Assembly: GCA_047495785.1 (NCBI GenBank)
Contig: JBLDXI010000002.1
Coordinates: 930,001-994,000, forward strand
Reading direction: 5' to 3'
Source: Lepidodermella squamata
Taxonomy: Eukaryota > Animalia > Gastrotricha
Length of the DNA stretch: 64,000 bases
Shown here one piece after another: positions 29,092 to 52,869 of the stretch (its first letter is position 1; each line of letters starts with the position of its first letter). A program made the position numbers and the translations under genes. The notes beneath the pieces are model-generated. The model saw only the letters and a program-made list of their open reading frames with translations, was not told the DNA's origin and ran no database searches.

Positions 29092-29219
29092 AGGAGGATG
29101 ATTAGGGCGGAACGAAAAAATAGCCTCAAAAAATTAGCTTATTTATTTGATTTTCCATGTTAAATATTAGTGCAAAACTGGATGCTAAAAATGGAGGATA
29201 TTTTTTTTTTTTCACCCTG
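29092..29219 (+). repeat. Left terminal inverted repeat
   Basis: AGGAGGATGATTAGGGCGGAACG...; first ~90 bp match the right TIR with one mismatch, then the copies diverge. Confidence 0.93.
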
Positions 29220-29347
29220 TTTTTTATAAAAATGTCACCCGCTGCAACACATGCTATATGATTTTTTTTTCGAACTCAATTTTATTGTTATATCAGTGAA
29301 CACATGAAATCAATAAATGAATGGTGTCATTAAGCCATTGTCAAGAA

Positions 29348-30022
29348 TTAATTGATATGACGGCCAAATCTAAGAACGCCAGGACCGCGGCCAACACCTC
29401 CAGTCAACAGAGCAAATCCTCCGATGAGTCCAACAGCAGTTAGTAATGCAGAGAGCCCAGCGCAAGTTGCCAAGAGTACCGCATCCCAACCAATACCACT
29501 ACCACCATTGCTCGATGCCTCATCCTCAACTGCATCTGGAGCTACAACAGGCGACAACAGACCAGTCGTACAATTCGAGAGTGTATCAATTGTCATAAGC
29601 GTTGTAGTAGTGGTTGGCATGGTCGAAGACGGTGGGTTACAGTTGTTTATCGTTGTCGCTCTCTGCGTCGTGGATATCATCTTTCCAGAATCCATACATG
29701 AGACATCCGGCGAAGTCACCCCAACAGGGGGCGTTTGTGTTGACACCGATTTAACTGTGGCAGTTGATATAACAGATATGAGTATTGGCGTCCGTGTGGA
29801 TGTTGGCATCTTTGTAGACGTTTTTGACGTGGGCGGCGGCGTCCAAATTGTGGTCGTAGTACACGGACGCGATCGGACAGTTTTATTACCGGCAAACGAT
29901 GTAACACCCGACGGAGTGGTGTTCAAGGCGTAGGCTGCATTCACTCGGCCCACGGATGGCGGTAGTAATGCCAGTGATATATTTGCCAGTATAAAATTAG
30001 CGACATTAAGAAGCTGTGACAT
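29348..30022 (-). CDS. Mucin-like type I membrane glycoprotein (Maverick accessory)
   Basis: Hydrophobic N-terminus, T/S/P-rich ectodomain with NxT sequons, C-terminal hydrophobic helix, short tail. Confidence 0.7.
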   Translation of the reverse strand: MSQLLNVANFILANISLALLPPSVGRVNAAYALNTTPSGVTSFAGNKTVRSRPCTTTTIWTPPPTSKTSTKMPTSTRTPILISVISTATVKSVSTQTPPVGVTSPDVSCMDSGKMISTTQRATTINNCNPPSSTMPTTTTTLMTIDTLSNCTTGLLSPVVAPDAVEDEASSNGGSGIGWDAVLLATCAGLSALLTAVGLIGGFALLTGGVGRGPGVLRFGRHIN

Positions 30023-30045
30023 CTAAAATAAGTGTAAAAAAGTAA

Positions 30046-30744
30046 TTATTCAGTTTTATTATTACAGTTAGAAGATAGGAAATTATGATCATCCTGCGTT
30101 AGATCAAGACTAAAATGGTGATTATAGATCTTGTTGCAGAACTGAATGAATTCATGAACAAGAGCTATTCCGTCGTCAAGATTTTTCACTCCTATTATAG
30201 TAAATCGTCCCGAGAAAGGGAAGAAATTAACTTTTCGATTGTTAAATGAGAGTCGCATAGCTGAGAAAATTTCAGGTTGATATACAGTTTTAACTGTGTT
30301 CGTCTCCTTGATAAAGTATAGGTATAAAAGATTCAAGTCGATGAATTCAAACGGTAGTCGTCCAGTCAATACGATGTTATGCACTTGGAAGTCTGAATAA
30401 GACGGAGGTTTCGGAGACGATATCCATTTACATATCTTTGATGCAATTTTAGATGACGCCAGCTCGAGACTATTTATATCGCGGAAGTTACGCCCTCCAA
30501 GTAGTAAAACCTTTCCGGATGCGAAGACTCTCGCGGTCACTCGAGGCTCACATTTCAAATTTACACATCTTGGTACCTTCATACTATTGAAATATGTGTT
30601 TACACCTTGACTGGCAAGCAATCGTAAATTTACACATCGATCAAGGTTAAATGTCGCGACAATATTGCCTATTCTGATATCTACAATCCAATCAGCCGTG
30701 ACAGGCTTTGGACTTCTCATTGGTGTTGTCAAAGTACTGTCCAT
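30046..30744 (-). CDS. TATA-binding-protein (TBP/TRF2)-like factor
   Basis: Two TBP repeats: NIVATFNL..VNLRLLA..EPRVTARVFASGKVLLLG and FQVHNIV..IDL..YQPEIFSA..SGRFTIIG; probable ATG at 30744. Confidence 0.85.
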   Translation of the reverse strand: MDSTLTTPMRSPKPVTADWIVDIRIGNIVATFNLDRCVNLRLLASQGVNTYFNSMKVPRCVNLKCEPRVTARVFASGKVLLLGGRNFRDINSLELASSKIASKICKWISSPKPPSYSDFQVHNIVLTGRLPFEFIDLNLLYLYFIKETNTVKTVYQPEIFSAMRLSFNNRKVNFFPFSGRFTIIGVKNLDDGIALVHEFIQFCNKIYNHHFSLDLTQDDHNFLSSNCNNKTE

Positions 30745-31752
30745 GCTGCTGAGCAAAGTGACATCTACCACGCCGCAGAATGTCACTGGCTAGGTTAGCC
30801 GATGGTCGATTGATAGGATCCTTACACAACATTAGATAAATAAGACTAAGAATGGAATCAAAATTTAAAATCGAGCGATGATCAAGATTCAAACTCGAGT
30901 AAAACGCATTTTTACACTGAGTCTTTCGAATAATCTCTTTATATAATGTGGTAAGTTGACGAGATGAAAACAAGGGTTCTAACGTAATTAGTTCTAATAT
31001 AGTTACAGCTAAGGACCAAATGTCGATTTTTTCATCATATTTCTTTTTGGGAAAAACTATCTCGAAAGCTCGGTATGAGAATGTTGTAACAGTATCTGTC
31101 ATAGGTGGAATGAAGGACTCTTCATCACAAATTGCACGAGGAAGTGATGACAATGAGCAGAGCGCATACGGATTCAATCGAGCCATTCCGAAGTCTGCTA
31201 GGTACACGTCCAAGCCATTCTGATGAACCATGATGTTCTGTAAATTGCTAAATATATATAGGTTAATGTAATTGACTAGGAAACCTGAGGACAAATGTCC
31301 CGATGAATAATGTTGAGACTGTGAATCTTGTCCAGTGCATTAAGCATTTGATCGAGCCAACGTGCGGTGAGAAGAGACATCATAGGGACGCTCAGGTTGT
31401 TAATCACATGCCTTAAATCCATTTTGTAGAGTTCCATTACGATATTGAGATCTTGCCCATTCGTGATGGCTGAGTTCGATGGAGGATAAATGACCTCAAT
31501 CAACCTGAAATATTTAAATTGATGACAAATAAAATAACCTCAGCATTTGAATTAAAACCTTGCAATGTTGGCCATTCCAGCTAGCTGGGTAAGGCAAAAA
31601 ATCTCCCGAGTCGCAGATTCATGTTGATATTGATTTGAGAGGCGTATCGTTTTGATCGCGTAGAGCTCTCCAGATTCGACATCGCGGTACTTGGCCACGG
31701 ATCCATAGGTACCGCTTCCGATGTGACTGATGTAAGTGTAATGTCCTGACAT
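30692..31752 (-). CDS. CMGC (CDK/MAPK-like) Ser/Thr kinase, 319 aa (exons 31752-31559, 31504-31285, 31237-30692)
   Basis: GSGTYG, AIK, SATREI, HRDICPQN, DFGMAR, YRAFE, DIWS; two GT-AG introns (54 and 47 bp) restore the frame. Confidence 0.9.
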
Positions 31753-31790
31753 TATTTAAAACGGCTGTTCCTGTTGATAGATAGTTGGCT

Positions 31791-34128
31791 ATGGGTAAAA
31801 CCAAGAATCCCCAGGATCAACTATCCAGTCAATTAGGGGAGATCTACTACTCTCCAAATCACGTAGGCAGTCTTGGTAGCGTCGCGTCGTTATACAAAGC
31901 TTACAAGGAAAAATATCCTAAAAATGGAATTACTGTTAAAAAAGTTCGCGAGTGGTTGGGAAATCAACGTACTTGGAGCGTATACAAGCAGGTTAGTACT
32001 CGAAATAGGAAATCTCGGAAAGTAGCATGCTTCAGTACTCACAGTTTGTATGCTGCAGATCTGTTATCAACGGTAAACGTTCAAGATGAAAACGATGGAG
32101 TAACTTGGCTTCTTACATGTAAAGACACGTTTTCGAGATACGCCTTTGTAGAGCCAATGCAAAATAAGTCAGGCCGAGAAACTGTTCGAGCTATCAAGAA
32201 ATTATCACCCCTCTGAAATTATTTATGCCTTGGTCCTAAAATCAGTCGGCCACTGTGTTGACCATTGTTCGGATTAAAATCAGACCGGCGGATTTTATGA
32301 GCGAGCCGCCGGTCTGATTTGTCTTAACTCGAACGAAGGTCAACTCAGTAGCCGTCAGATGGCAGAGCAAAAATTAAGACAACCCAAAAAGAGACAGGAC
32401 AAACAATAGGTTAAGGAGAAAATGGCGAAAATACAACAAATTCCTGGCTTAGGTAAAGGTAAAAGGCCACGTTGAAAATAGCAAAAAATTAACTAAAATG
32501 GCTTGGCTAATGGAATAGAGCTCAATATTGAATCAAGACAAAAATTCGTTCTAATTTGAATTATACAATTCACCCTGTTTTCTAAGCAGAGATTAAGAAT
32601 AATTCCAGAATTCAAGAGATTTGAACAGGTTTGAGGAAAAGTTACCGTTCTCATTCATTTTAGATTAATTTGTTCAACGCTGTTATCAGTGATCAAAATT
32701 TTTGGATTTGCCAATTGCCAATTTTCGATCAGCTGGTGCTTTAATTTGAAATCAATAGCAATGCCATGAATATCGAAATGCAGGCCGGAAAGAGTAATAG
32801 GGTTAGATCCCTCTATAAATTTTAGGAGCAGTTTGACGGCAACTGAAATTTATCGCCTGAAAGCTGTATTTAAACAAAAAACGGAATTGTATTTACAGTA
32901 GATAATATAGAGCTAGGTCTGACAATCTACATCACCTGAAACCTCAATAATTACTGAAAATACCTGAACTTGAGCCGTTCTTGCCACCTTCGGTTAAAAA
33001 GAATCTATTCAAACCTCCGAAACTCAGCTTAAAACATGCTAGTAGCTTTCGAATCAAAATTCGGAAAAATGAAGCCCGACTAATGTTTACGAAGTCCACG
33101 TGTCTTAGTCCAAAGGAAAAAAAATCAGTCTCTTTTCCGTCGTGACGCGGATTACTACTAGGACATGTCGCAGATGGGTGATAATAAGTATATTGCCTTA
33201 TTTGCAATTTTAGTCAGCTGGCGGATTTTGGTCTCCGGCCTGGCGGCCTCCGACCAAAAATCCGCCCGCTGACTAAAATTACAACTAAGGCAATATATTA
33301 TAAATATTTAGTAGGGTCAAGCAGTTGCCATACGCCCTGGTATGTGATAGAGGGTCAGAATTTGTCAATAAAGAAGTCAAAACGTATTTGAAATCTGTTG
33401 GTGTTCACATGTATGCGACCAACTCGGAGAAGAAAGTCCCTCAAATCGAATCGTTCAACAAGTTACTGAGGATTCGTCTAGCCAAGCTGGCGTTGGCACG
33501 GAACGATTACCGATTCATCGATGACTTGGAAGACATAGTTCAAACATATAACAACTCAGTTCATTCCGCGACGAAACTTACCCCATCTCAACTATATCAT
33601 GATCCTGCAAACGAGAAGAAGAATAAGTTATATGAAAATTCCGAACTTGGACTTGAAGTCTATGAAGGATCCCGAATGCAATATCAAGCGTTCGTAAACG
33701 TGTTTGGGAGCGATCAGCCGTGGCGGACACAAAAGTCGGTGAAATTCGCTTTAGGTGATGTGGTGAGAATATCTGCTGAACGTGGTGTGTTCGACAGAAC
33801 GCGACATATCACCTTTACAGATGAGTATTTCAAAATAGCTAAAGTAATAAAGCCAGACAAGTTCGGACCGTACACATATAAATTATACGAGTGGGATAAG
33901 GATGTTGGCGACTACGTGAGTCCAGTTGCCGGGGTGTTTTACGATCATGAACTTCAAAAAGTCGAATTACCGGAAGAGTACTTAATAGATGAGGTCGGTA
34001 GTGAGAAGCGAAAGTTCCGTGATGGAACAACTCGAGTATTGGTGACTTGGAAAGGATTCCCGAAATCACAAGCTTCATGGGAACCCATCGAGAATATAAG
34101 AGCAGCTAATAGAGCAAGTAACAAGTAA
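31791..34128 (+). pseudogene. Retroviral-like (rve) integrase with C-terminal chromodomain, interrupted by a 1.1-kb insertion
   Basis: AADL/DTFSRYA, CDRGSEF and IESFN DDE motifs; chromodomain LVTWKGFPKSQASWEP; removing 32202-33303 gives a continuous 411-aa ORF (..AIKK|IFSRVKQLPY..). Confidence 0.9.
32202..33303. mobile_element. Non-autonomous insertion with asymmetric subterminal inverted repeats and long hairpins (Crypton- or Helentron/HINE-like)
   Basis: TTATCACCCCTCTG at the left end pairs with CAGATGGGTGATAA at 33171-33184; imperfect palindromes at ~32248-32353 and ~33189-33297; inserted in an A-run; no convincing ORF. Confidence 0.7.
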
Positions 34129-34159
34129 TCAATGAAATTAATATATAAAAGCAAATAAA

Positions 34160-34528
34160 ATGAGCATCATGCTATCGATGAATCGCAAATGGTTCGGAGG
34201 CGACGCACATATCGTAAATACAGACTCTATGCCGCAACTCGACGACGTCCAGCAACGAAACGTCGTAGGCATTGATCGATCGTCAATCGATGAATTCACA
34301 CAGCGCATTGACGACAATCATCGTAACTTAGAGCCGTCTGAGGAACAGTCAAATCAAAGTAGCAGCGGTTGGACAGTCCAATTTCGGCGTAGTCTGAGAG
34401 TCGCATCAGTTGCCTTCTTTCTGACCGCCTGGCTTGTCACTGAAATATTTCGTGCAGCCAACGAATACCTTTGGTGTCGCAATAGTAGTATCCCACCCGA
34501 GTCATCAAATTATCAAAACAGGACATAA
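34160..34528 (+). CDS. Small Maverick protein with one hydrophobic segment
   Basis: 122-aa ORF packed between integrase and mCP; hydrophobic stretch VASVAFFLTAWLV. Confidence 0.55.
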   Translation: MSIMLSMNRKWFGGDAHIVNTDSMPQLDDVQQRNVVGIDRSSIDEFTQRIDDNHRNLEPSEEQSNQSSSGWTVQFRRSLRVASVAFFLTAWLVTEIFRAANEYLWCRNSSIPPESSNYQNRT

Positions 34529-34530: not shown

Positions 34531-36381
34531 ATGACCGGTCATCAACAAATCAACTCATTTTACTTGTATCTACCAAGTAATTCGAGCATGTCCTACTACC
34601 CAGACAACAATCCAGCTTCATTTCAAGTTAAATTAGCGAATGAAATTGACCTCGGAGGTGTAGGTAACTGGGAAATGGGACTGATCGAGTATATAGGACC
34701 GGCTACTTGGGAAACTCTAGAAAAAACCAACTATTACGTGTTTAACTGCCATTACGTTATTGGGGAAAAATTCCCGGACGATCCGTTTACGAGTGGGGAC
34801 GCCTTCGAATGCAGTGTCGGTGGAGCTTACTATCCATCCCCTGAGGATTTAGTAGAGCATATGACAAGGTCAAATCCCAAGCCTAACGATATAATTATTG
34901 ATTACGATCGAGTAATCAACCGGGTATCGCTGAGAATCCGCCAAGGGAGTGAGTGGGGGCTGTACATACCTGAGAACTTGGCTAACGTCTTAGGGTTTCC
35001 TGGGGCGGTTCTCGCTATCAATTACTATGATGAGTCAGAAGTAGAGCAGGGCTCTAATCGGGATATATGGTTCGCTAAAGATTTCCAGGGGCTATTAGGT
35101 TATTTTGTGCATGGCTATAAGGTGAATAGACCCCTTATTCACGGTCCGCTGCATCGAATGGAAGGCAATCGATTATGGTACCGCGGCAGAGTCCACACAG
35201 TGGATGAACCGTCAGGTCTAAAACGTGCACGAAGGGACGCAGCTGGACCTGTGCCGGATGCAGAGACGTTCAATGAGGTAGACATGTCATCTCTAATTAT
35301 TAAGCTGAGTGGAAAACGAGGAAATGATCTCGATGAAACACAACCACAGAAAGCACCAATGGCATCTGCAACAACGAAAACAACAACAACAACAACGATG
35401 AATGGAGCGAAAACAACAGCAGCGGTGAAATCTACGGCAACCACGGCGGAGCCACCCAAGACGGTGACGTCTACGACAACCAGTGCGGTGCCACCCAAGA
35501 CGTCTACGGCAACCAGTGCGGTGCCACCCAAGACGTCAACGACAACCAGTGTGGCACCAACCACAGCTGCGACGGTGACGTCAACGGCAACCAGTGCGGT
35601 GCCAACCAAGACGGTGACGTCTACGACAACCACTGCGTCAACGACAACCAGTGCGGTGCCACCCAAGACGTCTACGGCAACCACTGCGTCAACGGCAACC
35701 AGTGCGGTGCCACTCAAGACGTCAACGGTAACCAATGTGGCACCAACCACAGCTGCGACGGTGACCTCAACGGCAACCAGTGCGGTGCCACCCAAGACGT
35801 CAACGGTAACCAGTGCGACACCAACCACAGCCGCGACGGTGACGTCAACGGCAACCAGTGCGACACCAACCACAACGACCACCGTCGCCATCGCACCATC
35901 GCAAACGCCGTCTGATACTCGTAACACAGAAATCTCTGGCGAGGAACCACCAGCGCAACCGGGTCAAAAACGACAACGACTATCGGATATCCTTGACGTG
36001 GAAGACGATGAGGTGAAAATTGGCAATTGGCAAATCGAGACGTCATATCTAGTGTACCATCTATCGAAAACTGAGAAAAAAGTGGCGCCGTATGCAGTGC
36101 AACTAGATTACGGCCTACCATTTATCTGGATGTATTGTGACGTTCTAGAGAGTATAGTTGTGGGAGATGTGAAATCACCCTTATTGCGTATTATCCCTAC
36201 AGAGAAAAATGTCGAACGGAAAGCAGTATTTTCTGTATCTTTTAAAAAACCAATATATGTTAAAATTCAACGTCGTATATTAGATACTATTGCTCTGAGT
36301 CTATATAAAGACAGTGGTCGGCGTATAGCCTTCCAGTCTGGCAAATCAATCGCTGTTGTTCACATCCGTCCTATTGTGTAA
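34531..36381 (+). CDS. Minor capsid protein (penton) with Thr/Ala-rich insertion
   Basis: Polinton mCP-type N-terminus FYLYLPSNSS..YPDN..F..L..W..GL.E and C-terminus YCD.....VGD..PLLR.I...Y..I....G..I.F. Confidence 0.85.
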   Translation: MTGHQQINSFYLYLPSNSSMSYYPDNNPASFQVKLANEIDLGGVGNWEMGLIEYIGPATWETLEKTNYYVFNCHYVIGEKFPDDPFTSGDAFECSVGGAYYPSPEDLVEHMTRSNPKPNDIIIDYDRVINRVSLRIRQGSEWGLYIPENLANVLGFPGAVLAINYYDESEVEQGSNRDIWFAKDFQGLLGYFVHGYKVNRPLIHGPLHRMEGNRLWYRGRVHTVDEPSGLKRARRDAAGPVPDAETFNEVDMSSLIIKLSGKRGNDLDETQPQKAPMASATTKTTTTTTMNGAKTTAAVKSTATTAEPPKTVTSTTTSAVPPKTSTATSAVPPKTSTTTSVAPTTAATVTSTATSAVPTKTVTSTTTTASTTTSAVPPKTSTATTASTATSAVPLKTSTVTNVAPTTAATVTSTATSAVPPKTSTVTSATPTTAATVTSTATSATPTTTTTVAIAPSQTPSDTRNTEISGEEPPAQPGQKRQRLSDILDVEDDEVKIGNWQIETSYLVYHLSKTEKKVAPYAVQLDYGLPFIWMYCDVLESIVVGDVKSPLLRIIPTEKNVERKAVFSVSFKKPIYVKIQRRILDTIALSLYKDSGRRIAFQSGKSIAVVHIRPIV

Positions 36382-36413: not shown

Positions 36414-36839
36414 ATGCACAGTGCAGATGTTTACGAGAATTTTTTGTTACATCAGGCCGGTTACGGTAACATTGAAGCCTTTCGAGGGCAGCAGATAGTA
36501 TTTCCATCGTATCAGTCTGGAGGTGGTTTTGGCAGTGCAGCCGTTGGTTTTTTGAGAAAGCATTTTATACCATTACTAGCTCCTATTTTCAAAAATATAA
36601 CGGCCACAACGGCCAATATTGCCCAGGATCTGATTGAGAAGAAGGGTGGTGACACGGGCGCAATATTCAAAGCAAGGGCTCTCGAAGGCGCAAAATCATT
36701 AGGAAAGGATGTACTTAGCTATGCCTCGAACCAAATCGGGTCTGGGGTGGCTAGGCGCAAGCGAAAGAGAAAAGTCGCCGCAACAAATCAACGCACTCGT
36801 GGTGGGAAACGCGGTAGATCAAGACGCGTTTTCATGTAA
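36414..36839 (+). CDS. Putative virion core protein with QxGxG motifs and Arg-rich tail
   Basis: QAGYG, QSGGG, QIGSG; C-terminal RRKRKRK..RGGKRGRSRR; lies between mCP and MCP. Confidence 0.7.
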   Translation: MHSADVYENFLLHQAGYGNIEAFRGQQIVFPSYQSGGGFGSAAVGFLRKHFIPLLAPIFKNITATTANIAQDLIEKKGGDTGAIFKARALEGAKSLGKDVLSYASNQIGSGVARRKRKRKVAATNQRTRGGKRGRSRRVFM

Positions 36840-36895
36840 AAAGTATATATAAAACACACTAGTGTGCAATCCTCATCGAATAGTATGCGCTAGCA

Positions 36896-38281
36896 ATGTT
36901 CATTCACCCGTCGTCTGAGAGCGCTCTTAGAGCTGAACTCGATGTGTTCAGTATAAGCCCGACACAGGTTGAAATAGAAGGAAACTACATCACAGAGTAT
37001 GCTCCAACATCGTCAATTGTAAATCAAACCCGCCTAGACTTCGATGTTTGTACTTCAAACGACTGGACAGACCTGAGTCGCAGTTACATTGAAATTCGGT
37101 GTAGAATCATCAACGGAACTGACGCAACAAAGAAAGTCGACGGTGACGTCGCTGCTATCAACCTGCTGTTGCATTCGATGTTTTCACAGGTCGACATGTT
37201 TCTCGGTAATACTCAAATCACGGAAAGTTCCCCGACCTACCCTTATCGCGCTCTAATATCGACGATACTTAGCTATGACATTGCAGCTAAGGAGACATAT
37301 CTACCTCTCCAGGGATATTACGCTGACGAGGCGGGGAAGCTCAATGATATGGTGAACTCGGCGACTGGGGTAGATCCTGTCACAACCATGTCCAACGGAT
37401 TCAAAGTTAGGAAGGAGGTATCAGCGAAGGGAACCACCATGCTACTTATCGGAAAGCCGGTAACTTATATATTTTATCATTTGAAATGTACATTTAATAA
37501 AAATGAATAAATATAGCATCTCGAAATGTTCAACCAGCCTAAATTTTTGGTACCTAACATGAGTTTCCGGCTGTCATTCATTCGATCGCCCGACTCATTC
37601 GTTTTGATGTACCCTGATTCGAGCAAGTCTTATAAATTGGAGATTTTAGACGCAAAGTTAATGATCAGACGTGTTCGGGTCACTCCGCAATACACGCTCG
37701 GCTTACAAAAAGCACTCCTAAAAACCAATTGTCGATATCCGTTGAATCGAAATTGGATCAAAACGGTCAACTTACAGAAAGGATCCTTCACGTACAACTT
37801 GTCAAATATCATAATTGGACGCATCCCGAGGCGAATGATTATGTGTCTTGTGAAAGATTCGGAAATGAAGGGATCTGCTCAAACTAATCCGTTCAATTTC
37901 ATTCACGCCAAATTACAGCGAATATCGGTATTCATAGATTCCGAGCAGGTAGTCAACAGCCCATTGGAACTTGACTATTCAACCGGTCAAGTTGCGCGAG
38001 GCCTTCACAGCTTGAACCAGTGTCTATTTCCCTATTCAAAGAAGAATAATGGCATCACCCTAAAAGAGTATTCAAAAGAGGGAGGCTATAATTTCTGGGG
38101 TTGGGATCTGAGCAGTGATAGTAGTAGAAGTTTGTTCAGCCTGGTTCGTACCGGGGTTTTACGTATCGATTTGGTGTTCGCAGAAGCACTAGCTGAAAAT
38201 TTGAATTTACTCCTCTACTTTGAATCCGATCAAATTCTGGAAATTACGTGGAATCGAGCTGTCGTGGTAGATTTTAGCTAA
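36896..38281 (+). CDS. Major capsid protein (double jelly-roll), 442 aa; intron 37460-37516
   Basis: ELDVF..PTQ, N.LHSMFSQVD, YPYRA, NPFNF motifs; the 57-bp GT-AG intron joins GKP|HLEMFNQPK. Confidence 0.93.
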
Positions 38282-38955
38282 TGTCAGCATTCGGACCGTA
38301 TAATGATAGGACAAGTAGTCTTAATTCTGTCCAACTTGAATGTATGCTAGCCTACGCAGATTGCTGTCTTCAGCATGTTCCTGTGAGGCGGGTGTTACCG
38401 TGGGATCACCTAATACACGGTTTCGCGTCGCATACTGTACGACCGATGGCATTCATTGTAAATACAGATGCTAGCGGCATGCCTGGGTCGCACTGGCTAG
38501 CAATTTACATCGGGTCTAACCCAGAAAATCCACCGCTGTTTTTCGATAGCTACGGGCAAAGTGCTGGCTATTATAATGCCGCGATTGAAAACTATTTAGA
38601 AACTATATCTGCAGCGCCTATTACGGCATACGAGTATAATACTAAATGCTGGCAAGCTCAGAAATCACGGGCATGCGGCTATTACTGTTACTACTTCTTA
38701 TATTTGGCGGCAAGAGGTGCTAGCCTAGAAATGATTTGCCGATTTTTAGCAACTGCCGCAGACCATCGTCAAACGACAGTAGATGAATTTGTGTACAATC
38801 AGGTGAATAAAATCATATATAAAATTCAAGCGGTGGTTGTAAATAGCAAGAATCGACAACGCAATTCGTGTTCTGCCCAGGAATGCAAGTCGCTGGCGGA
38901 GCACGGGCTGAGGTTGAGTTCGACCTTAGCCTGCAAGCGCCATTCACTAGTCTAA
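38281..38955 (+). CDS. Adenain-like cysteine maturation protease
   Basis: IVNTD...GSHW, FFDSYG, Q...CG.YC (His/Asp/Cys); ATG overlaps the MCP stop (TAATG). Confidence 0.92.
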   Translation: MSAFGPYNDRTSSLNSVQLECMLAYADCCLQHVPVRRVLPWDHLIHGFASHTVRPMAFIVNTDASGMPGSHWLAIYIGSNPENPPLFFDSYGQSAGYYNAAIENYLETISAAPITAYEYNTKCWQAQKSRACGYYCYYFLYLAARGASLEMICRFLATAADHRQTTVDEFVYNQVNKIIYKIQAVVVNSKNRQRNSCSAQECKSLAEHGLRLSSTLACKRHSLV

Positions 38956-39590
38956 TAATCGGTCCTAGCTCATCTGGTAAAACGCATCTAATCAGGCAGC
39001 TGTTAAATGACACAGATTCGATAACGCCGAGGCCCAATCGAATTATATGGTATCACGGAGTGACGCAACAGGTGCATGATGTCATTCGTCAAGAAGTGCT
39101 AGCTAGTCGCAAAATCGATATCGAATTTCGCACTAATGGGCTTGAAGACCTACATTTCGATGAATTTTCGACAACAGCTACGACAGCACCAGCCTCGCAC
39201 AGCTTACTTATAATTGATGACCTTTATGATGTAGCTAAAAATTCTGATAAGGTGGCGCAATTATTTTTCAAGTATTCTCATCATATGAATTTATCTGTTT
39301 TCCTAACTCAGAATAATATATATCCTAGAGGCAGTAGAAGTAAAGATATGGCTGTAAATACGCACTATTTGTTTTTGTTTCGTAATCGCGGTGATATGCG
39401 TCAATTCAGATACTTGGCAGGGCAAATTGAAAATAATTGGCGATTTCTAGTGGATGCATATGAGACTGAGACTGCAGAGAGTCATCACTACTTATTGATT
39501 GATCTAACACCCGGCTGCCCAGATTCATTGAGATACCGAACAGGGGTCGGATCTAAACCTGGAGTGGTGTACTTGCCTACTGAATCGTAA
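38883..39590 (+). CDS. A32/FtsK-like genome packaging ATPase
   Basis: Walker A GPSSSGKT, Walker B LIIDDL, SHH.N.S....QN motif. Confidence 0.92.
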   Translation: MQVAGGARAEVEFDLSLQAPFTSLIIGPSSSGKTHLIRQLLNDTDSITPRPNRIIWYHGVTQQVHDVIRQEVLASRKIDIEFRTNGLEDLHFDEFSTTATTAPASHSLLIIDDLYDVAKNSDKVAQLFFKYSHHMNLSVFLTQNNIYPRGSRSKDMAVNTHYLFLFRNRGDMRQFRYLAGQIENNWRFLVDAYETETAESHHYLLIDLTPGCPDSLRYRTGVGSKPGVVYLPTES

Positions 39591-39701
39591 AAATTTGATT
39601 ATCTTGAACGATGTGAAATAAATATGTATAAAGAAATAAACTTGCCGTTGTTTTTTCGCGTATTTCTATCTCTCTCTTGCACAGGTAACGTGTACACGCA
39701 C

Positions 39702-43319: not shown

Positions 43320-46300
43320 TTATTTGGGTTTATAGCCATATGGAACAGAGTCGTACGTATTCTTGTCAAAAACACGCTTGTTGAGCTGCGGTTTCAGCCT
43401 TTTCTTTACGTTAACCAATTGAACACCAGCAGGAGCTTGAAATCGACGGAAAAATGTTTGATCCATGGATAGGTAATTAGCACCACGTGTCGCTGAATTA
43501 GCATACTCACTGTCAAAGTAAGACGCTAACAGCTCAATTAAGGAATCATGCGAGATTTCATGCTGATTGCTGAATGTTTGAGTCAGCCCTGATTGTGCGC
43601 GCGGCCATTATCATGTGTCGTAAATTATTATTAATACGCATACTTACCTTTTGCCTTGCTTATTACCTTGCCTGATGACAGTGTTAAACAGTAAGTCTTA
43701 CACGCGATTGATGTGAATTCAAGAATGCATTCACCTAGTCCTATTTCACTTTTCCACTCGCCTAAATGATAACTCTCAGGAATCGGATCGATCTCACCTT
43801 CGTCAAGGTAATAGATCAGGGAATCAGCTAGTTTGAGAGCGAGCGAGATACATATATAATATATATTTATAGAAAATATAATAACGTACTATCCGTATAA
43901 AGTAGTCTGTTACCGAGTTTGACCATGTTCTCGTGCAGAAGAATTCTACTGTACGCGGTTATCATACTGGCGATAACTGGATTGGTCGTGGCCTTAGAAA
44001 CCTCGCAGTCCTCAGCATCTGAGAATGAAACACGAGCCCTCTCGCACCCACCTGTTGGTCCGACGATATCGACTGATTGAACTGATTTATTTGTGCTTGA
44101 CATAAGTTCAATCAACTGGCTTGGATCTTCTAAATATACAACCTCCTGGTTACCCTCGCGCAGGGCAAAGCGACCAAACGATGCATTACTCAAAAGCTTA
44201 GCCACAGATCGAAGAGGTGGATTTGGAGAGTTAAGCTGCTGTTTATCTAGAGTGAAATTATATCTCTCCTGGCATTCGCGTATAAATGTATCTATATCAA
44301 TATTTTCCGGTAATGCTGAGTTTTCCATCTTGGACTTTTGTAAATCGAGCACAAGCTTGTCAAAGTTCAAATTCGACCTTTGTTTCCAAGACCATGCCTC
44401 GTAAATAGTGATCAGTTTATAGCCGCAATTTTCAATGGCATATGTCACCTCAGGAGTTGTCCAGGCTGATGTAAGAGCCCTCTGCTCCTCATCATGTTGA
44501 CAATCGAGTGTTGTTACACACTCAGATGCGCAAGTGAAACAATTAGTGAAAACAAAACGAGAGGACGCACCACATCCGATCTTAATTCCTAGAGCTGGGA
44601 TCAAATTCGAGGGGTCTGGTAATATTTTACAATATAAAACGCCGAATAATTTGAGAGACTCATCTTGACTATAAAATCGAGCTTTTAAAGCTTCATCGTT
44701 CAGTCTGAGTCGAAGGACATCATGGTCGATTTCGCCTTGAATGTAAACTTGCGAGAACATGGAATAGGCATACGATGAGTTCAGATCTTTAATAAGAATT
44801 TTTCGAGTTTTTCCATCAACTTTCATGTGGCATTTCAAGACTTCAACTCTACCTCCACTTAAACTAGATCTGGCTTTAAGCGGGGGAATTATTTTAAATT
44901 TAGAGTTTAATTCACTAGAAATAGATTGGTTTTCAGAGAGAAATCGTTTCCATTGGCAGGTGGTTTGAACTCTCAGGCTGTACCCGCTCTCTCTAATTGC
45001 CTGATGCCTCATTTGACTCTTATAGTTCAACTTACCATACGTAGTTCGCATTAATGTTGAGTAGGAGTTGGAATCAAAACAATCGGAACAGCCGTGAATA
45101 TGGCACGAGTCGAACTCTAGTACTTCAAGAATCTTACCTGAATCGATATGTCTTACAGCTCCGTCTACTTTAATCCAATTTCCATTAGCTAGTCTAAGAG
45201 TCACCTCTCGCCCGTTTTCACTACTATCTATCCTATGATAAGCCGGTGTTGCTTGAGATGATAGAAAATGTATCCATTGTCGACATTGAACACTAGTTGA
45301 GTCAAGTAAGCAATAGCCAGAGATGGGAATGTACTGAATGCTATCGGCGGACATGTATTTAAGCTTATACAGCGCATGAGCTATCGAGCTTATGGTACAA
45401 TGCGCGGCCAATGCATTGATACCAGCTGGAGCTTTCGGACAGATTGAAAGGTCGCGAAATAGCTTGTTAAATCGAGTCATTGCTAATCGCATGACTGCTA
45501 CGTCGATTGCTGTGTATTCCGTGATTTCATCGTGAAAATTAAATGGCTGGCCTAATCTTCGCTTTTTATCGATCATATTGCGCAAATCTACGACATCTTG
45601 CTCATTTTTGATTTTCGATGTGTCATAGGCTGAAATATTAGGCCACGGGTCTATAGTGTTATTTCCAGGCTTGAAACACTCAACTGTGTGAATGAGATGG
45701 GGAAATATACCTTTTCGAATTTTCATTTCAGGTAAAAATGCCGGCCCGAGCTTACTCACACTTGTATGCACAAATGAATAGCCGTCTATAAAACGCGGAC
45801 CTAGCCGACCTATGCGTAATTCTAATATGGACCCATTGCGAAACAAGGTGTTTAATTTTAATCCAGAATCTTGAGCCACCCTAGCAACTAAGAGCTGGTC
45901 AAATTTAGATCCGAACCAGCTTACGTATGTTATCCCACTCAATTGCTCCTGCATGATGTGCTTTACAAATTGGGTCATTGCATCTACTCGATTAATATAA
46001 TCGTAATAGAAAAATAACTGGTGGCACTCGCATACACCTGGATATACTGGGCTTCGGTCACTTGGATAATCGACTGCTTCGAAATTTTCACATTTGTTGC
46101 AGCTGAATTGGCAACAAACGACGGACGGAACAAAGTAGTTATTTTCATCTCGGAAAGTCTCCGTGTCAAACCACCCGAATTTATAGGTCGATCGCTCTTT
46201 CGGTGGGAAGGCCTGCCAATAACATACTCGATGGTCGCGAAAATTTCCATCGATAATTATACCGCATTGTGGGCATTTTTTACCACCTCGGCATCGATGA

Positions 46301-47790
46301 GCGGCTAGGTGCTTTCTAGTCAGCGTTTTACTACATTTTTCACAGCGAGCGTAGTTGGCACATGTCTTATTTTTAAGATGGTTGCTGTAGCATTGTGCTG
46401 AGAAATACAACCTATTACAACTAGCGCAATGAATCTTCGATTCATCGTCTAAATAACTACTACATCTGACCCACGATCGACGCTGGACTAGAGTCGCAGG
46501 TGACAGTATATTACTGGGGTCAGTGTGACTCGTCCGAGTAGGCTCTAGGCACGCCCGACATCGGAAGCGACACGCATGGCTTAGTTTTGTATTTACTACA
46601 GTATAACACTCAGTACATAATACACGACCTCTCATAAGTTGTGATGGAATATTTTTCAAGCCGCCGTAGTGGCCGAACGTCCTACCCATAAGCTTCGGGC
46701 TAATGTAAACTAGGTAAAACTTTTTCGTATAGCTGGTTTTCTTAACATCTGGGTAGCTATAGCATATTGCTCTCTGTTCTAAATCATATACTAAAACTTG
46801 CCATTTGTCGAATCTATTATAATATTGAAGAATTCGTTCAAGCGTGTCGATACCATAGCTCTCAGCTGTGGGATCTATACCAGCTTTGTTCATAAGATCC
46901 AGCGCAACGCTTCTTAACAATGCCGCATTTTTGATGAGGCGAAAATATATCCGCCCTTTTTCTTCGAGGTATGGATGTAATATGTACATGAGCATATCTT
47001 TCGCGCGCTTTTTACGATATAAAAGAAATTCAGCGTATGCGCGTGCTAATATTATTGCGTAAATAAGACAATAATTTGAATCATCCTCTGGTGTTTTGAT
47101 GTAACCCGATAGGCTCTCGACCCAGTTCGTTAATTTTTGCTCTAGTAGCGGACGACGGCGTGTTACAGAACGTCCGCGACCCATCATTTGCTTAGCTGTC
47201 GTCTCCGCGTCAGATGAGTTCTGAATTTTCAGTCTTTTATCTGCTACGGTGGAGATGCCGGCGCCATCGATAATAGCTGTAGTAGAATTACGCTTTTTCA
47301 CATTGGAGCTATCAGCACTGCTGTTGTTATTTTCTGCTAGTATAACACGCGCAAATACTGAAAAATGCTGTTGACCTGCTGCGACGTGATCATTCGATTG
47401 AACAACTCGCTCTATCCTATTCAAAATCACGTCTCCAGACAGTTTTGCTATCTGGATATACTCCATATCGACTGGATATCGTAAATCAGGATTATCTAGT
47501 TGTAATTTGCATATATCACGCTCGTTGAACTTTGAACGTAAATATGTGACGATTTCTTCAAAATTAGCGTGAATTTTTTCGTAGAATAGCTTCAGATCTA
47601 TTGCTGGCTTTTTGTCCTGCTTAACCCCGGCGGTGCTACTACGGCCATATCCGTGTTGTTGGGCGCTGACTAGAATATTAGCTACGTCCTCGCAGTTTTC
47701 ATACTCAGGTAGTTCCAGGGTGAATGAAAAAGATATTAGACCGAATTTCTGCGAATGTATCACACATGGCGTGACATTTTTTATGGCCAT
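43320..47790 (-). CDS. Protein-primed family B DNA polymerase, 1449 aa (exons 47790-43890, 43827-43648, 43588-43320)
   Basis: ExoI FDTET, ExoII FD, ExoIII YTAID, GGRVE, DLNSSY, K..SN..FG, spliced YTDTDS and KAKG, terminal PYGY; OTU-like C/H region and internal Vsr-like VDG..EF..C..HGC domain. Confidence 0.95.
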
Positions 47791-48078: not shown

Positions 48079-49577
48079 TGCTAGTCATCCCTGCGACGAA
48101 AAACAATATATTTCATTTTAAATTACAAAAATGACTCGGCTTACTTATTAGCAGTCACTTTTCTCGGGCCCGACTGGCATCGGCGGCGCTGGTGGCGTAC
48201 TGGCGTGCTTTTCCTACGTCGCCTAAAAACAAATATATAGGTATCGTCATCATTATTTTCAATTATGACAGTACTTACTGTGGCGTTTTCAGCACATCTT
48301 CAGTATTGGTTGTTGTCGTAATCTTATCGTCCTGGTCGTGACAAGCCAACACCGCACCGTCAACCGCTGGCTTTTGCTGCTGTAGCTTCAGCCGCATCTT
48401 CAACGGAAGTTGCTGTTCGGCGCTGACATTTTGCTGATCGGCATGTGACTCAACAACAGACATATCACCGGCACCATCGCTGTTGTTCTGCGGCTCCGAT
48501 GTAGCACTGTTCTGCGGCTGTTCTGCTGCTCCGGGTTGATGGTACAGCAGACTTGATTGCTGGCTCGACTGCAGAGATTGTTGCATCATACGTTGCACTA
48601 TTAGAAAGTGTAATGCTTGCCAGTGTTTTCTCGTGCCGGGCTGTCGCCTCATCGGCTGTCTTCTTCGCCGCCAGCAATTCTTCGATTGTCCCGCGTAGTA
48701 TCGTAGTTTCAACATCCAACTCCTCGACCTTCCTCTCAGCCTTCCCGAGTTTAGTACGTTGATTATGTATCTCGTTCTCATGGCGCGCTGCTAACAGTCT
48801 CCATCCCGCCAAATCAACGATCATGTCGCCCAGTAAGATGACCATCGAGCTCATAAGCTCAGATGGCATGTACATAAGCGTGCCCTCGAATTTTTGTACT
48901 ACTGCCGTAGTGACGCCGGAAATCTCACCCAAGGCATCAACGTCGGCGTAATTTTCCGCCAAGAATCTTGGTAAACCTAGAGTCACATAAATCACGTGAT
49001 GGTTTTCAATGACGAGAAAAAAATACTTGCGAGTATAAGTATGTCTATCCAAATATTGACGAAACCGTGATTGTGAATACATTTGAGCTGGAATCTCCAT
49101 CATAGGCGCCATCGGTCTGGTCGCCATCTGCGGCATCGGCAGGGGCGCAATAGACAACATGTGCGCCTTCGGCTGCGGCGCCATCAGCCCGGTTGCAATC
49201 GGCCCGGGCGCAATCGGCCTGGGCAGCACAGGCGCCATCGGTTGGGGCGGCACAGGGATGGGCGGCATAGGCGCCATCGGCCGGGGCGCCATCGGTTGGG
49301 GCGGCACAGGCATGGGCGGCATAGGCGCCATCGGCCGGGGCGCCATCGGTTGGGGCGGCACAGGCATGGGCGGCATCGGCACTTGCTGCTGCTGCTGAGC
49401 GATCGGTGCTTGGCTCATGTTACTCGATGTTTGTTGTTGTTGGACACTAGGTGCCATGGAGAGCGGGTGTTGTCGCTGAGCGGTCTGGTGAGAGACTGGC
49501 AGTTGATTGTCACTCGCGAGGCGTGGAATAGGCATTATCGCTGGCTTGATGCCTGGCATCGCTTGATGCTGTTGCAT
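48079..49577 (-). CDS. Q/P-rich protein with coiled coil and spliced basic tail (apparent frameshift near 48540)
   Basis: ORF 48465-49577 (54-bp PMAPRPMAPMPPMPVPPQ repeats, heptad Leu) overlaps ORF 48275-48781, which splices via GTAAGT to an RRRKST..RRR exon. Confidence 0.55.
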
Positions 49578-49651
49578 GGCTATGATTAGTAAAACTCTAA
49601 TAAAATAAAAACGCGTATATTATTATTTTTTACTTTATTTCACACACGCAA

Positions 49652-49984
49652 TCACTCAGGTGAGGATGAGGCAAAGAACGCAGGGCAGAGCCGTTGTATA
49701 ATACGTAGCGCGTATATGTAACATTCGGGTACTGAATGATTACTATTAGCATATTTGTTATAATATTTCAGAAATGTTTCACACGCGTATGATATCTGAG
49801 CATCGCTATCGTACAAGCTAAGAATAACGATAGCCATAAAATATGCTGATGTATCGTTTTTTCGTAGGTTCTGATATTTTGACTGACTAATGCCGCGATG
49901 TTGCAGATGATACGACATATATTTTCCGAACGTGTCGCACAGCTGTTCTATCAAGAGATGAATATATGCGTCGCTCGATGCCAT
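49652..49984 (-). CDS. Maverick hypothetical protein
   Basis: 110-aa ATG ORF of ordinary composition between AT-rich spacers. Confidence 0.5.
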   Translation of the reverse strand: MASSDAYIHLLIEQLCDTFGKYMSYHLQHRGISQSKYQNLRKNDTSAYFMAIVILSLYDSDAQISYACETFLKYYNKYANSNHSVPECYIYALRIIQRLCPAFFASSSPE

Positions 49985-50193: not shown

Positions 50194-50386
50194 CACCGTG
50201 TCCCAGTATTAGCGCAACTATTTTTTTTTTTTTTGTTTAATTGAGTAATTTTTTTGTTTAGAAAATTCAACTATTTCAATCCCAATAAAATTTGATATGC
50301 GCGATATATCTATTCTCATGATTTTTCTGTCTATGAGATGTGACTCTCAGATTTTTTTTCGCTTGCGCTACTTATGGGACACGATG
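50194..50386. mobile_element. Host Tc1/mariner-type MITE nested in the Maverick
   Basis: TA|CACCGTGTCCCA...TGGGACACGATG|TA; right end closely matches the 19418 MITE terminus (GTCCCATAAGTAGCGCAAGC). Confidence 0.8.
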
Positions 50387-50429
50387 TATATTATATTTTA
50401 ATAACAACTCGCGTGGCCTGGCGTTATAA

Positions 50430-51231
50430 CTAGTCGCGAATGACGCGCTTCAAAATCGAAGGCAGTTGGCGCATCGACTCATAACTGAACGAAACACCAT
50501 CGCGAGAGGGGCACGGTTTGTCATTATTGTCAAGGTAGTAAAAGCGAATGTCACAATGGAGCCGAATCTTATTCGCAGAGTTATACCCAGGATAATAACA
50601 TTGGGCATAAAATCCATCCCATATTTCAAACAGATCACCAACCCGCGTGATATCAGCCGGCGTATTGACCTTAACGAGCTCCAACTCCCCGGATCGCTCT
50701 AGTTTTTCTATAATATCACAAACCCGCTTGAACCAGTCCGATCGCTGAGTCATACCTTCCAAAAGTTTTCGGGCTTCTGTTGTTGACAGCCATAACCCCC
50801 GCGAAAAAAATTTGGATTGCAGCTTATCAGAGAAAAATATATCTTCACTGACCACCCCTAAGAAATAAACTGGGTACCCGGGTTCACTCGTGGAAAATCG
50901 AATAACCTTTTGCTGTTTGTTATTGCGAAAGGGCTGAATTTCATCTAATTCACAAATGTTACCTGCCAGCGTGATATAACGCCGGCTTGGCCGTACCAAT
51001 GACGCATCGCGATTGACGATTGTCTATATATTTAAAACAATATTTTATATGTTAAATTTACGAATAAATAAATACCTTGGTGCTTGGTGGAATGTTCTCC
51101 TCGTTTTCTCGTCGCGGCGATGAGTCAGGAGATGACGCTGACGGTGATGTCGCTGTGACGCGTGCCGTTGTTGTGTTGGTTTTATCACCAAGCGATTTGC
51201 GAGATTGCTCTTGCGGCAGAAGAGGTGCCAT
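50430..51231 (-). CDS. PC4/Sub1-like ssDNA-binding coactivator, 249 aa (exons 51231-51076, 51023-50430)
   Basis: CDIRFYYLDNNDKPCPSRDGVSFSYESMRQL matches the PC4 pattern IDIREYW.D..G...P.RKGISL..EQW.QL; Ser/Thr-rich N-terminal exon; 52-bp GT-AG intron. Confidence 0.75.
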
Positions 51232-52072
51232 TATAGAGCGAACAGTGTTTTATAGCGCGAATAATAAGACAATGATAACACAAATGATTTTGGCAACTGA
51301 TTATGAGGTGGCTTATCGACTCGTATTTATAGGTGCGTATTTGCATCGATCACTCAATCAGCTTTCACCTGAACCGTGAAAATGAATGAACTAGACTACT
51401 ACTCATGCTACTGCTTTTTGATCTCTTTATCGGCTGTTTCGGCCGCTTTTTTCCTTTGTCGGCAATCTCAGCTTCCCACGTGAGAGTTGATATCTTTATC
51501 GGCATTTTAGCGCTTGTCAAACAGCTGTGTTTTATAACCGGTGGCTGATACTATATATATATAATATACTTGCGGTGTATATTATTACATATTTTTACTA
51601 CATATCACAGTGGTATATGATTGGTCGGTTAGGTCTTATATTTCGATGGCGATTGGTCGACGCTGAGAGCGTGATATTATCGCAACATATCGATAATCTT
51701 ATATCAATGCGGCGATTGGCTGATACTTCTACGCGGCGAGCGTGTTCATATTATCGCAATATATCGATAGCGCGCGCACATCATCATCGGCTGCTATAAT
51801 CGGCACTTATAATCCCTCTGTATTTTTGTCCTTTGCCGCAATGCAACGTTTTACTTAACTCCAGATCACACATCTGGCTGAGAACACCCTCGCTAGAATA
51901 TCATTTTTCAGTCGGAATTATTACCGCCAACGCTGTTAATTTTTACTCTCCGTCTCTTCACGTATTACCGCAATCGTCATCCGTCCGCCCTCTCGCCTGA
52001 AATATATATATCTGGTATGATATTAATTTATTATTATTTTTTTAATGATTTTTATTCATTTTTGTTCAAGCT

Positions 52073-52513
52073 ATGTCGCGTCGCCCTCCTACTGGTCGTT
52101 CTATCCGTCACACGTCGAAATCACTCGCCAGTAATACACGTCCAGCTGCAGGTGTTGTGTTTGGCGAAATTACAGCTGAATCGCCGCCAATAATCGATGA
52201 TGTGCAATTCACTCGTATGAAAATACCGATGACTAACATATATATGTCACGGCGGCGTCTCTATCGCTCAGCGACCACTGTTGTTGTCTCGGCTCAGCCA
52301 CCTGCTTATCGACTGCAACCCGTCAAAGGAGGTTTGGCTTATGTCGATGTTTACTTCGACGACGCAATTCGCGAGTCCGGTGATACCTTTATTCGATCTT
52401 ATTATATCGATCGCCTGTTAAATGCGCATTCGCTTGTCAAGGCCATTGAAGGCTATCTCGAAAATTATATTTACACCGGTAGTGGCTGCTTTATTGAATA
52501 CTTGTATTACTAA
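52073..52513 (+). CDS. Maverick hypothetical protein
   Basis: 146-aa ATG ORF near the right TIR, with AATAAA downstream. Confidence 0.5.
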   Translation: MSRRPPTGRSIRHTSKSLASNTRPAAGVVFGEITAESPPIIDDVQFTRMKIPMTNIYMSRRRLYRSATTVVVSAQPPAYRLQPVKGGLAYVDVYFDDAIRESGDTFIRSYYIDRLLNAHSLVKAIEGYLENYIYTGSGCFIEYLYY

Positions 52514-52742
52514 TAGTCTCTCGATCCTATACACCTCATACGTGTTCGATAATGACGGCTGCCTCATTACATTCTTGCGTTCCTTTGCACACTCGATTGG
52601 CAATTATACTCGCTCCGCAGTTAAATAAAAATTTTAATCACCGTGATATATCAATCTTTATTTTCTCATCAAGTTGATTTTACAGGGCAGGGTGACAGGA
52701 AAGTGATAGCCGTTGCTGTTGGCGAAAAAATGAAAAATATAG

Positions 52743-52869
52743 CAGGGTGACTTAAAAATATCCTCGATTTTTTTAGCTTCCAGTTTTGCACTAATATTTA
52801 ACATGGAAAATCAAATAAATAGGCTAATTTTTTGAGGCTATTTTTTCGTTCCGCCCTAATCATCCTCCT
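52743..52869 (-). repeat. Right terminal inverted repeat
   Basis: Reverse complement of 29092-29219; ends ...CCGCCCTAATCATCCTCCT. Confidence 0.93.

Follow-up and report, generated by a model that had tools for sequence, protein, structure and literature searches.

A 64,000-nucleotide stretch of the genome of the gastrotrich Lepidodermella squamata (assembly GCA_047495785.1, contig JBLDXI010000002.1, positions 930,001 to 994,000; hereafter the window) contains, at positions 29092-52869, an interval that we tentatively read as a recently integrated, nearly complete Maverick/Polinton (polintovirus-type) element. The same reading holds that the element is expressed by the nuclear machinery of its host and that its accessory genes, which encode a TBP paralogue, a CDK-like protein kinase, an MPPED-like metallophosphoesterase, a RING-finger protein and a probable PC4-like protein, are long-held viral genes; taken jointly, these propositions are given a probability of roughly 45%. 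The presence of this cargo is real and unusual. An initial annotation of the interval had proposed that the cargo forms a coordinated transcription-initiation and signalling module, a proposal that is possible and is unsupported beyond the co-residence of the genes.

Terminal repeats and core genes

The element is 23,778 bp from end to end, within the 15-25 kb expected for a Maverick/Polinton, and is bounded by terminal inverted repeats (TIRs) of 100 nt each that are 98% complementary and lie exactly at the outer bounds of the interval (Table 1), in line with the TIRs and bounds named in the initial annotation. Because the TIRs are 98% identical, the insertion is considered young. No target-site duplication of the 5-6 bp type flanks the TIRs, since the hexamers read on the two sides differ. 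A minisatellite with 12- and 21-nt periods (28949-29081) stops 10 nt before the left TIR and is not resumed past the right TIR. Combined with the lack of a duplication, this may indicate that the insertion site is rearranged or otherwise unusual. No copies of the element genes were found in the flanks of the window.

Protein searches were run exon by exon against Pfam, PHROGs, the PDB and a protein database. Six core genes had been listed for the element in the initial annotation; four of these (PolB, integrase, packaging ATPase and protease) are recovered by profile, the last two as borderline matches, and the two capsid genes are assigned by position only. The strongest match is that of the protein-primed PolB, whose conserved YxDTDS motif is whole only once the first intron is removed and whose KxY motif follows in the next exon. 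A truncated PolB was considered and dropped, since two canonical introns restore the conserved motifs. The N-terminal 550 residues of PolB (43870-47790, minus strand) form a long extension with several Cys/His clusters and without a Pfam match; the OTU domain that is reported at the N-terminus of PolB of the adintovirus type was not detected in this extension. The rve core of the integrase is matched in two collinear pieces (profile positions 19-56 and 69-96), each of them weak (E 0.01 and 0.04), and its chromodomain is matched at E 3e-7; the break in its reading frame is an insertion-type interruption of ~1.1 kb with hairpin-forming ends and without a usable splice donor. The ATPase and the protease each fall within 1 bit of their Pfam cut-offs and occupy the expected adjacent positions. 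Neither the candidate major capsid protein (MCP) nor the candidate minor capsid protein, a 616-aa open reading frame (ORF), has a match in Pfam, PHROGs, the PDB or the protein database, and a PDB sequence search with exon 2 of the candidate MCP and the N-terminal part of the 616-aa ORF likewise returned nothing. The middle of the 616-aa ORF is occupied by a Thr-rich coding tandem array with periods of 33-78 nt (35423-35874, plus strand).

Once introns are allowed for, the genes for PolB, candidate MCP, protease, ATPase, TBP, kinase, phosphoesterase, RING protein and PC4-like protein are free of stops and frameshifts. The accessory genes sit in three separate blocks and not in one unit. Near the left TIR, the kinase, TBP and mucin-like genes lie head to tail; the phosphoesterase and RING genes separate the virion block from PolB; and the interval from PolB to the right TIR holds the Q/P-rich gene, small ORFs and the probable PC4-like gene.

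Introns and promoters

Nine short introns (47-62 nt, GC content 0.12-0.39) are predicted in the element, eight with GT-AG and one with GC-AG borders. They are distributed over the kinase (two), PolB (two, near the 3' end), the phosphoesterase (three), the candidate MCP (one) and the PC4-like gene (one), and the splice models are backed by conserved motifs, namely the YxDTDS motif of PolB, the collinear Metallophos matches of phosphoesterase exons 2 and 3, and the kinase catalytic loop across intron 2. Since core and accessory genes alike carry such introns, the element depends on the nuclear spliceosome, and introns are therefore no mark of host-derived genes here.

A TATAWAW box is present within 100 nt upstream of 8 of 20 gene starts, where random positions would give 2.1 (P = 0.0007). 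There are five copies of the consensus box TATATAAAA in the window, four of them on the plus strand ahead of four virion-block genes. The exact 10-mer TATAAAACAC is present in three copies (0.22 expected; none of 100 shuffles reached three), all on the appropriate strand and 14-48 nt upstream of an ATG. One copy belongs to the candidate MCP, one to the PC4-like gene and one to a Lys-rich small ORF, which means that a virion gene and at least one accessory gene have a promoter element in common.

The kinase, TBP and mucin-like genes are arranged differently. The kinase frame stops only after it has run 53 nt into that of TBP (30692-30744, minus strand), and the ATGs of the TBP and mucin-like genes each directly follow a pyrimidine-rich tract that resembles a 3' splice site and ends in AG. 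The three genes may form a single leftward, alternatively spliced unit that would start in the 38-nt gap shared with the divergent integrase. A kinase-TBP fusion by splicing was also considered and dropped, as no intron of usable length lies between the frames; the two genes may nevertheless share a transcription unit.

Comparison of codon usage yields a correlation of 0.51 between cargo and core genes and of 0.34 between cargo genes and flank ORFs, which is weak evidence.

The TBP paralogue

The TBP-fold protein of the initial annotation is borne out by both sequence and predicted structure. Its Pfam match covers two repeats at E 4.8e-19 (68.4 bits versus a cut-off of 22.9), and HMMER aligns both repeats to the yeast protein and other TBPs in the PDB at E ~1e-11. 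An AlphaFold2 model built from a 40-sequence family alignment (pLDDT 85.7, pTM 0.77) was matched by Foldseek to TBP cores with TM-scores of 0.75-0.86 (normalised to the cores) and E ~1e-13. Compared with yeast TBP (chain 1rm1_A), the saddle retains the two central Asn and the two Val residues, along with three of its four Phe; in TBP-DNA structures, the Phe residues at these positions kink the TATA box.

The paralogue is highly diverged. An HMMER scan of 1.84 billion representatives recovered 545 members of the TBP family, none at E < 1e-30, and the paralogue is 27-34% (about 29%) identical to 143 representatives that are themselves a median of 51% identical to canonical metazoan TBP. At ~29% identity to every representative, the protein is a long-branch member of the family and no newly captured canonical TBP. 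Such divergence in an intact frame would argue for long maintenance under constraint. A word-indexed protein search with the TBP ORF returned only two TBPs, both ~28% identical. The entry P0003 (E 4e-20) was considered as a special relative of the paralogue and dropped, as it is a four-repeat canonical TBP that scores twice.

Kinase, phosphoesterase, RING finger and PC4-like protein

Exons 2 and 3 of the kinase match the Pfam Pkinase profile, and the Gly loop, VAIK Lys, HRD and DFG motifs are present. The best PDB matches differ among exons: for exon 1 they are CDK13/12 (the CDK13 N-lobe), ~5 bits ahead of CDK1/5/4/2, with MAP4Ks also matched; for exon 2 they are weak matches to MAPK4 and CK1; and for exon 3 they are PfPK6, a MAPK, CDK13/12 and CDK8. 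The description of this protein as a CDK/MAPK-like kinase thus stands at the level of a CMGC, CDK-like enzyme, and does not extend to the subgroup of kinases that act on the C-terminal domain (CTD) of RNA polymerase II (Pol II); its catalytic loop is atypical. No cyclin gene was found in the element.

The MPPED-like phosphoesterase is well supported. The Metallophos profile (PF00149) is matched collinearly by exon 2 (E 1.9e-10, profile positions 2-96) and exon 3 (E 4.5e-4, positions 136-190), all five metal-binding motifs are present, and MPPED2, with three entries matched at E 5e-9, is the only relative among solved structures.

The RING-finger protein had been described as a RING-TRAF zinc-finger protein, and only the first half of that description is retained. 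The RING itself is clear (zf-C3HC4_2, E 2e-9; best PDB matches RING1B/BMI1, BRCA1 and TRIM5). The TRAF component is reduced to faint matches to Sina_ZnF (E 0.003, below cut-off) and TRAF3_RING (0.007) and to a single finger pattern; neither the Pfam search nor a reading of the 187-aa ORF revealed a zf-TRAF match or a TRAF-C/MATH domain. The hydrophobic-acidic tail of the protein may resemble a SUMO-interaction motif.

The PC4-like assignment is probable, and weaker than the initial annotation implied. Matches from three independent libraries (Pfam PC4; PDB entries 4usg, human PC4, E 0.26, and 4bg7, the phage T5 homologue, E 0.67; PHROG 4053, E 0.0085) fall on the same ~30 residues, and all are below threshold. 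A single-sequence AlphaFold2 model (pLDDT 35) was unusable for fold search, and BLASTP gave no support for an internal duplication in the ORF. Just 3' of the stop codon of the PC4-like gene, a 39-nt stretch (50351-50389) matches at 90%, on the opposite strand, positions 19415-19453 in the gap between two flank ankyrin ORFs, either by chance or as a small shared repeat.

Interpretation of the cargo

If the preferred reading is correct, the short AT-rich spliceosomal introns in core and accessory genes and the many canonical TATA boxes mean that the host nuclear machinery would express the element, and the accessory genes would each reprogram the host nucleus in its own way, with roles that we infer from the folds and motifs observed. 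The TBP paralogue would bind the TATA boxes of the element and favour its transcription by Pol II, the kinase would have the cell cycle or Pol II as its target, the RING protein would remove host factors via ubiquitin, the phosphoesterase would hydrolyse a nucleotide signal, and the PC4-like protein would bind single-stranded DNA, in transcription or in protein-primed replication. That these are genes of long viral standing is suggested by their divergence combined with intact frames and fold residues, by the shared promoter element, by the shared intron style and by codon usage.

Several observations weigh against this interpretation. Selection on the cargo is deduced from one sequence, and because the insertion is young by its TIR identity, intact frames prove little alone. 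In the TBP saddle, one of four Phe and both Thr residues are replaced relative to consensus; among three TFIIB-contact positions, one is unchanged, one carries a conservative substitution and one, a Glu, is altered, so that binding of TATA boxes or of TFIIB by the paralogue is not assured. Host TBP would bind the same TATA boxes, and none was seen upstream of the kinase, TBP and mucin-like genes themselves. In the kinase, the lysine usual in the catalytic loop is missing and the APE motif is off consensus (one position each), so that the protein may be inactive. The Pfam PC4 match (PF02229) reaches only E 0.003-0.0075 and 16.2-17.5 bits versus a cut-off of 25, over profile positions 21-49 of 52.

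It is doubtful that the TBP paralogue, the PC4-like protein and the CDK-like kinase jointly constitute a private pre-initiation module that redirects Pol II, with the RING protein and the phosphoesterase as a linked signalling toolkit. The solid TBP fold, the ranking of the CTD kinases CDK13/12 as best for kinase exon 1 and high for exon 3, the TATAAAACAC element that the PC4-like gene shares with the candidate MCP, and the enrichment of canonical TATA boxes before genes are all compatible with it. The three genes, however, are split between two blocks that the map places ~20 kb apart; CDK12/13 outscore CDK1/2/5 and MAPKs by only a few bits, in a kinase whose catalytic loop is atypical; and PC4 is below its Pfam cut-off. 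PC4-like proteins, moreover, also serve as single-strand-binding proteins in phage replication, as with the phage T5 homologue (4bg7). With the weak PC4 match, a kinase of uncertain placement relative to the CTD subgroup that is without the usual catalytic-loop lysine, a RING protein without a TRAF domain and genes in three separate blocks, the coordinated module of the initial annotation is not upheld.

About as unlikely is the view that the cargo consists of host genes taken into the known cargo positions of Mavericks (as in nematodes), without a role in the element cycle and neutral or decaying. The introns of the cargo genes, the atypical catalytic motifs of the kinase and the rare GC-AG class of one phosphoesterase intron would fit such passengers, but introns of the same kind are found in the core PolB and candidate MCP genes, and the TBP paralogue, ~29% identical to every TBP, is far from the canonical cellular protein. 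Frames, splice sites and fold-defining residues are intact, the genes are tightly packed, with kinase and TBP frames that overlap by 53 nt, and a promoter element is held in common with a virion gene, all of which counts against this view.

Less probable still is interference, in which the TBP paralogue would be a decoy that binds the partners of host TBP or occupies host promoters (shut-off, or silencing of immune genes) and the viral genes would use host TBP. Several saddle and TFIIB-contact positions are indeed off consensus, and the viral TATA boxes are perfect consensus sites, which host TBP binds well; the retention of three of four Phe and both Asn of the DNA-binding face would nonetheless be unexpected if DNA were no longer needed. 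The absent target-site duplication and the minisatellite abutting the left end might point to an assembly artefact, or to repeats that flank host genes by chance. Either is very improbable given 100-nt arms, 98% identical, at the exact outer bounds, all core gene classes in the usual order between them, no copy of an element gene in the flanks, and uniform intron style and promoter motifs across the interval.

Comparison with known viruses and elements

A word-indexed search of public protein collections (5.8 billion clusters) recovered no relative of the polymerase part of PolB or of the 616-aa ORF; it seems that the lineage of the element is unsampled in these collections, or that the search was saturated by low-complexity words. 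As the search with PolB, intended as a positive control, itself came back empty, the finding of no close TBP relative cannot be read as absence of TBP from sister elements.

Among known elements, the nematode Mavericks (Widen 2023, 10.1101/2022.07.12.499685) have a cargo slot in the same place as a cargo block here. Their cargo consists of WASP proteases and of HipA/CtkA-like KRMA kinases with ubiquitin-like heads, whereas a eukaryotic CDK-like kinase lies beside a TBP paralogue in the gastrotrich element. The core genes of nematode Mavericks are intronless (10.1101/2022.07.12.499685), in contrast to the intron-bearing core genes and the two further cargo blocks described here. Vertebrate Mavericks (Barreat and Katzourakis 2021, PMC8097293) share the two-module architecture, the TIRs and a doubled terminal trinucleotide (AGT twice; here AGG twice), but are intronless and have 6-bp target-site duplications, whereas the gastrotrich element has nine introns and shows no such duplication. 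In dinoflagellates, Maverick-Polinton-like elements with introns have been documented. The polintoviruses of stony corals are, like the present element, integrated in an invertebrate genome; in these marine animals they are abundant and patchy in accessory genes, which include the transcription factor VLTF3 (Stephens et al. 2024, PMC11131425); the accessory genes presented in the main text of that study (VLTF3, antirepressor-like, DUF5679, collagen-like and nuclease genes) include no TBP, PC4, CDK-like kinase or metallophosphoesterase.

MELD and other polinton-like viruses (Starrett et al. 2021, PMC8502044, 10.1101/697771) are mid-size, PolB-encoding, Polinton-related viruses with homologues of host TBP and TRAF, and in the literature searched this study alone links Polinton-type viruses with TBP. 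TBP, TRAF, UCH and F-box appear there solely as map labels in figure legends, for datasets from non-animal eukaryotes and with no analysis (PMC8502044). Compared by description only, the set of TBP, CDK-like kinase, MPPED-like enzyme and PC4-like protein goes unmentioned there. The suggestion in the initial annotation that the combination is undescribed for Mavericks is weakened by these labels on maps of related viruses.

The TBP-like proteins of giant viruses (Nucleocytoviricota; in BFVD, for example those of Terrestrivirus and Heterosigma akashiwo virus 01 and an asfarvirus B263R homologue) have the same two-repeat fold. Foldseek comparison of the TBP model with BFVD gave E ~3e-12 to 1e-8 for the top ten matches and ~1e-4 further down, at 7-21% identity, and every named viral match belongs to a giant virus, an asfarvirus or an iridovirus, in agreement with the earlier remark that viral TBPs are chiefly known from much larger DNA viruses. 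With genomes of hundreds of kb, giant viruses encode an RNA polymerase of their own and mostly transcribe in the cytoplasm, whereas the present element is 24 kb long, lacks polymerase subunits and depends on the spliceosome. A functional likeness is offered by the herpesvirus late-gene TBP mimic, KSHV ORF24 (PMC12529657), with which a nuclear DNA virus steers host Pol II to viral promoters by its own TBP-type factor, as is proposed here. ORF24 is a distant structural mimic within a large multi-protein complex, whereas the gastrotrich protein is a recognisable member of the Pfam TBP family, and the likeness is one of function and not of homology.

Significance

Mavericks/Polintons are positioned close to the root of adenoviruses, virophages and giant viruses, and are usually described as wholly host-dependent for transcription. 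In a well-preserved element, the combination of a deeply diverged TBP with strong TATA boxes and spliced genes would show that basal transcription factors are acquired and retained even by the small nuclear representatives of this lineage, and would allow the TBP-like genes of giant viruses to be compared with a small-virus counterpart. An unlikely but more far-reaching version is a 24-kb nuclear, intron-bearing Maverick with its own basal Pol II factors, in which the TBP is tuned to TATATAAAA / TATAAAACAC and is accompanied by a PC4-like co-factor and a CDK-like kinase. If true, this would be the smallest known virus-like element with a private pre-initiation toolkit, and a living example of a step that the nuclear-escape view of how giant viruses arose requires, namely that an ancestor resembling a Maverick begins to possess components of the transcription apparatus. 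On this same unlikely reading, cyclic-nucleotide immune signals might be what the MPPED-like enzyme hydrolyses. The cargo also widens the range known for Mavericks beyond nematode proteases and kinases to nuclear regulators (the kinase, the RING protein and the phosphoesterase) that are candidates for manipulation of an invertebrate host. Should other copies of the element turn out to be without the cargo genes, the finding would be one more gene pick-up at a known cargo position.

Further genes and flanking sequence

The remaining ORFs of the element are listed in Table 1. The Q/P-rich coiled-coil protein was correctly noted in the initial annotation: a 54-nt coding repeat (2.8 copies, 97% matches, 49177-49381, minus strand) encodes its Pro/Met-rich part, and a coiled-coil tail is seen. 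Its only profile match is CCDC106 (E 0.002), and the PDB search gave no meaningful match. The 224-aa protein next to the left TIR was absent from the initial list, and neither Pfam nor PHROGs yielded a match to it. Its features suggest a mucin-type membrane glycoprotein, which, by analogy with the fusogen of nematode Mavericks, may bear on particle or cell-surface biology.

Table 1. Positions in the window of the genes, terminal repeats and promoter boxes of the element
Feature	Position	Strand	Remarks
Left TIR	29092-29191		outermost bases AGGAGG; 98% complementary to right arm
Mucin-like membrane protein, 224 aa	29348-30022	-	Thr/Pro-rich; N-terminal hydrophobic leader, C-terminal membrane span; adjoins left TIR
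TBP paralogue	30046-30744	-	single exon, 232 aa from first ATG; Pfam TBP (PF00352)
CDK-like (CMGC) protein kinase	30692-31752	-	exons 31559-31752, 31285-31504, 30692-31237; GT-AG introns of 54 and 47 nt
Integrase	31791-34128	+	rve core and C-terminal chromodomain; reading frame interrupted once
TATA box TATATAAAA	34142-34150	+	18 nt upstream of ATG at 34160
122-aa ORF	34160-34528	+	no Pfam/PHROG match
616-aa ORF, candidate minor capsid (penton) protein	34531-36381	+	by position only; globular N and C parts around Thr-rich tandem repeats
141-aa ORF with basic tail	36414-36839	+	no Pfam/PHROG match
TATA box, TATATAAAA overlapping TATAAAACAC	36846-36857	+	~50 nt upstream of candidate MCP ATG
Candidate MCP	36896-38281	+	two exons, 57-nt GT-AG intron 37460-37516; named by position and size only
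Adenain-like cysteine protease	38281-38955	+	Peptidase_C5 E 3.6e-4, 20.7 bits vs 21.3 cut-off; Peptidase_C48 E 0.008
TATA box TATATAAAA	38816-38824	+	upstream of ATPase ATG
Packaging ATPase, A32/IVa2-like	38883-39590	+	Walker A motif; Pox_A32 E 1e-4, 22.3 bits vs 22.8 cut-off; Adeno_IVa2 E 9e-4
170-aa ORF	39624-40136	+	no Pfam/PHROG match
TATA box TATATAAAA	40066-40074	+	upstream of 368-aa ORF
368-aa ORF	40140-41246	+	low-complexity, Q/acidic-rich; no Pfam/PHROG match
MPPED-like metallophosphoesterase	41243-42506	-	four exons; introns of 60, 53 and 59 nt (two GT-AG, one GC-AG)
RING-finger protein, 187 aa	42662-43225	-	RING, one TRAF/Sina-type Cys/His finger pattern, basic stretch, hydrophobic-acidic C-terminal tail
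Protein-primed PolB	43320-47790	-	DNA_pol_B_2 (PF03175) E 9e-24; two introns near 3' end
Q/P-rich protein	48275-49577	-	coiled-coil C-terminal part; ends at first stop or carries one frameshift
110-aa ORF	49652-49984	-	no PHROG match
Probable PC4-like protein	50430-51231	-	exon 1 51076-51231 (Ser/Thr/Pro/acidic-rich), 52-nt GT-AG intron, exon 2 50430-51023
TATA box TATAAAACAC	51245-51254	-	23 nt upstream of PC4-like ATG
46-aa Lys/Ser-rich small ORF	51365-51505	-	preceded by TATA box TATAAAACAC
TATA box TATAAAACAC	51527-51536	-	31 nt upstream of 46-aa ORF ATG
146-aa ORF	52073-52513	+	no PHROG match
Right TIR	52770-52869		pairs with left arm

Rfam and tRNA scans of the window were empty. The flanks of the element contain a galaxin-like repeat protein, ankyrin genes, a GDSL lipase and a retrotransposon with APE and reverse transcriptase domains. 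The galaxin-like repeats (E 3e-11) are found in a 407-aa single-exon ORF (14452-15675, minus strand) with a GC content at third codon positions (GC3) of 0.70, unusually high relative to its neighbours. The retrotransposon is of the long interspersed nuclear element (LINE) type and looks intact, with an uninterrupted 948-aa ORF (59734-62580, minus strand) that encodes the APE endonuclease and the reverse transcriptase (RVT_1, E 4e-31); a 296-aa ORF without a Pfam match (62620-63510, minus strand) lies upstream of it and could be ORF1 of the same retrotransposon.

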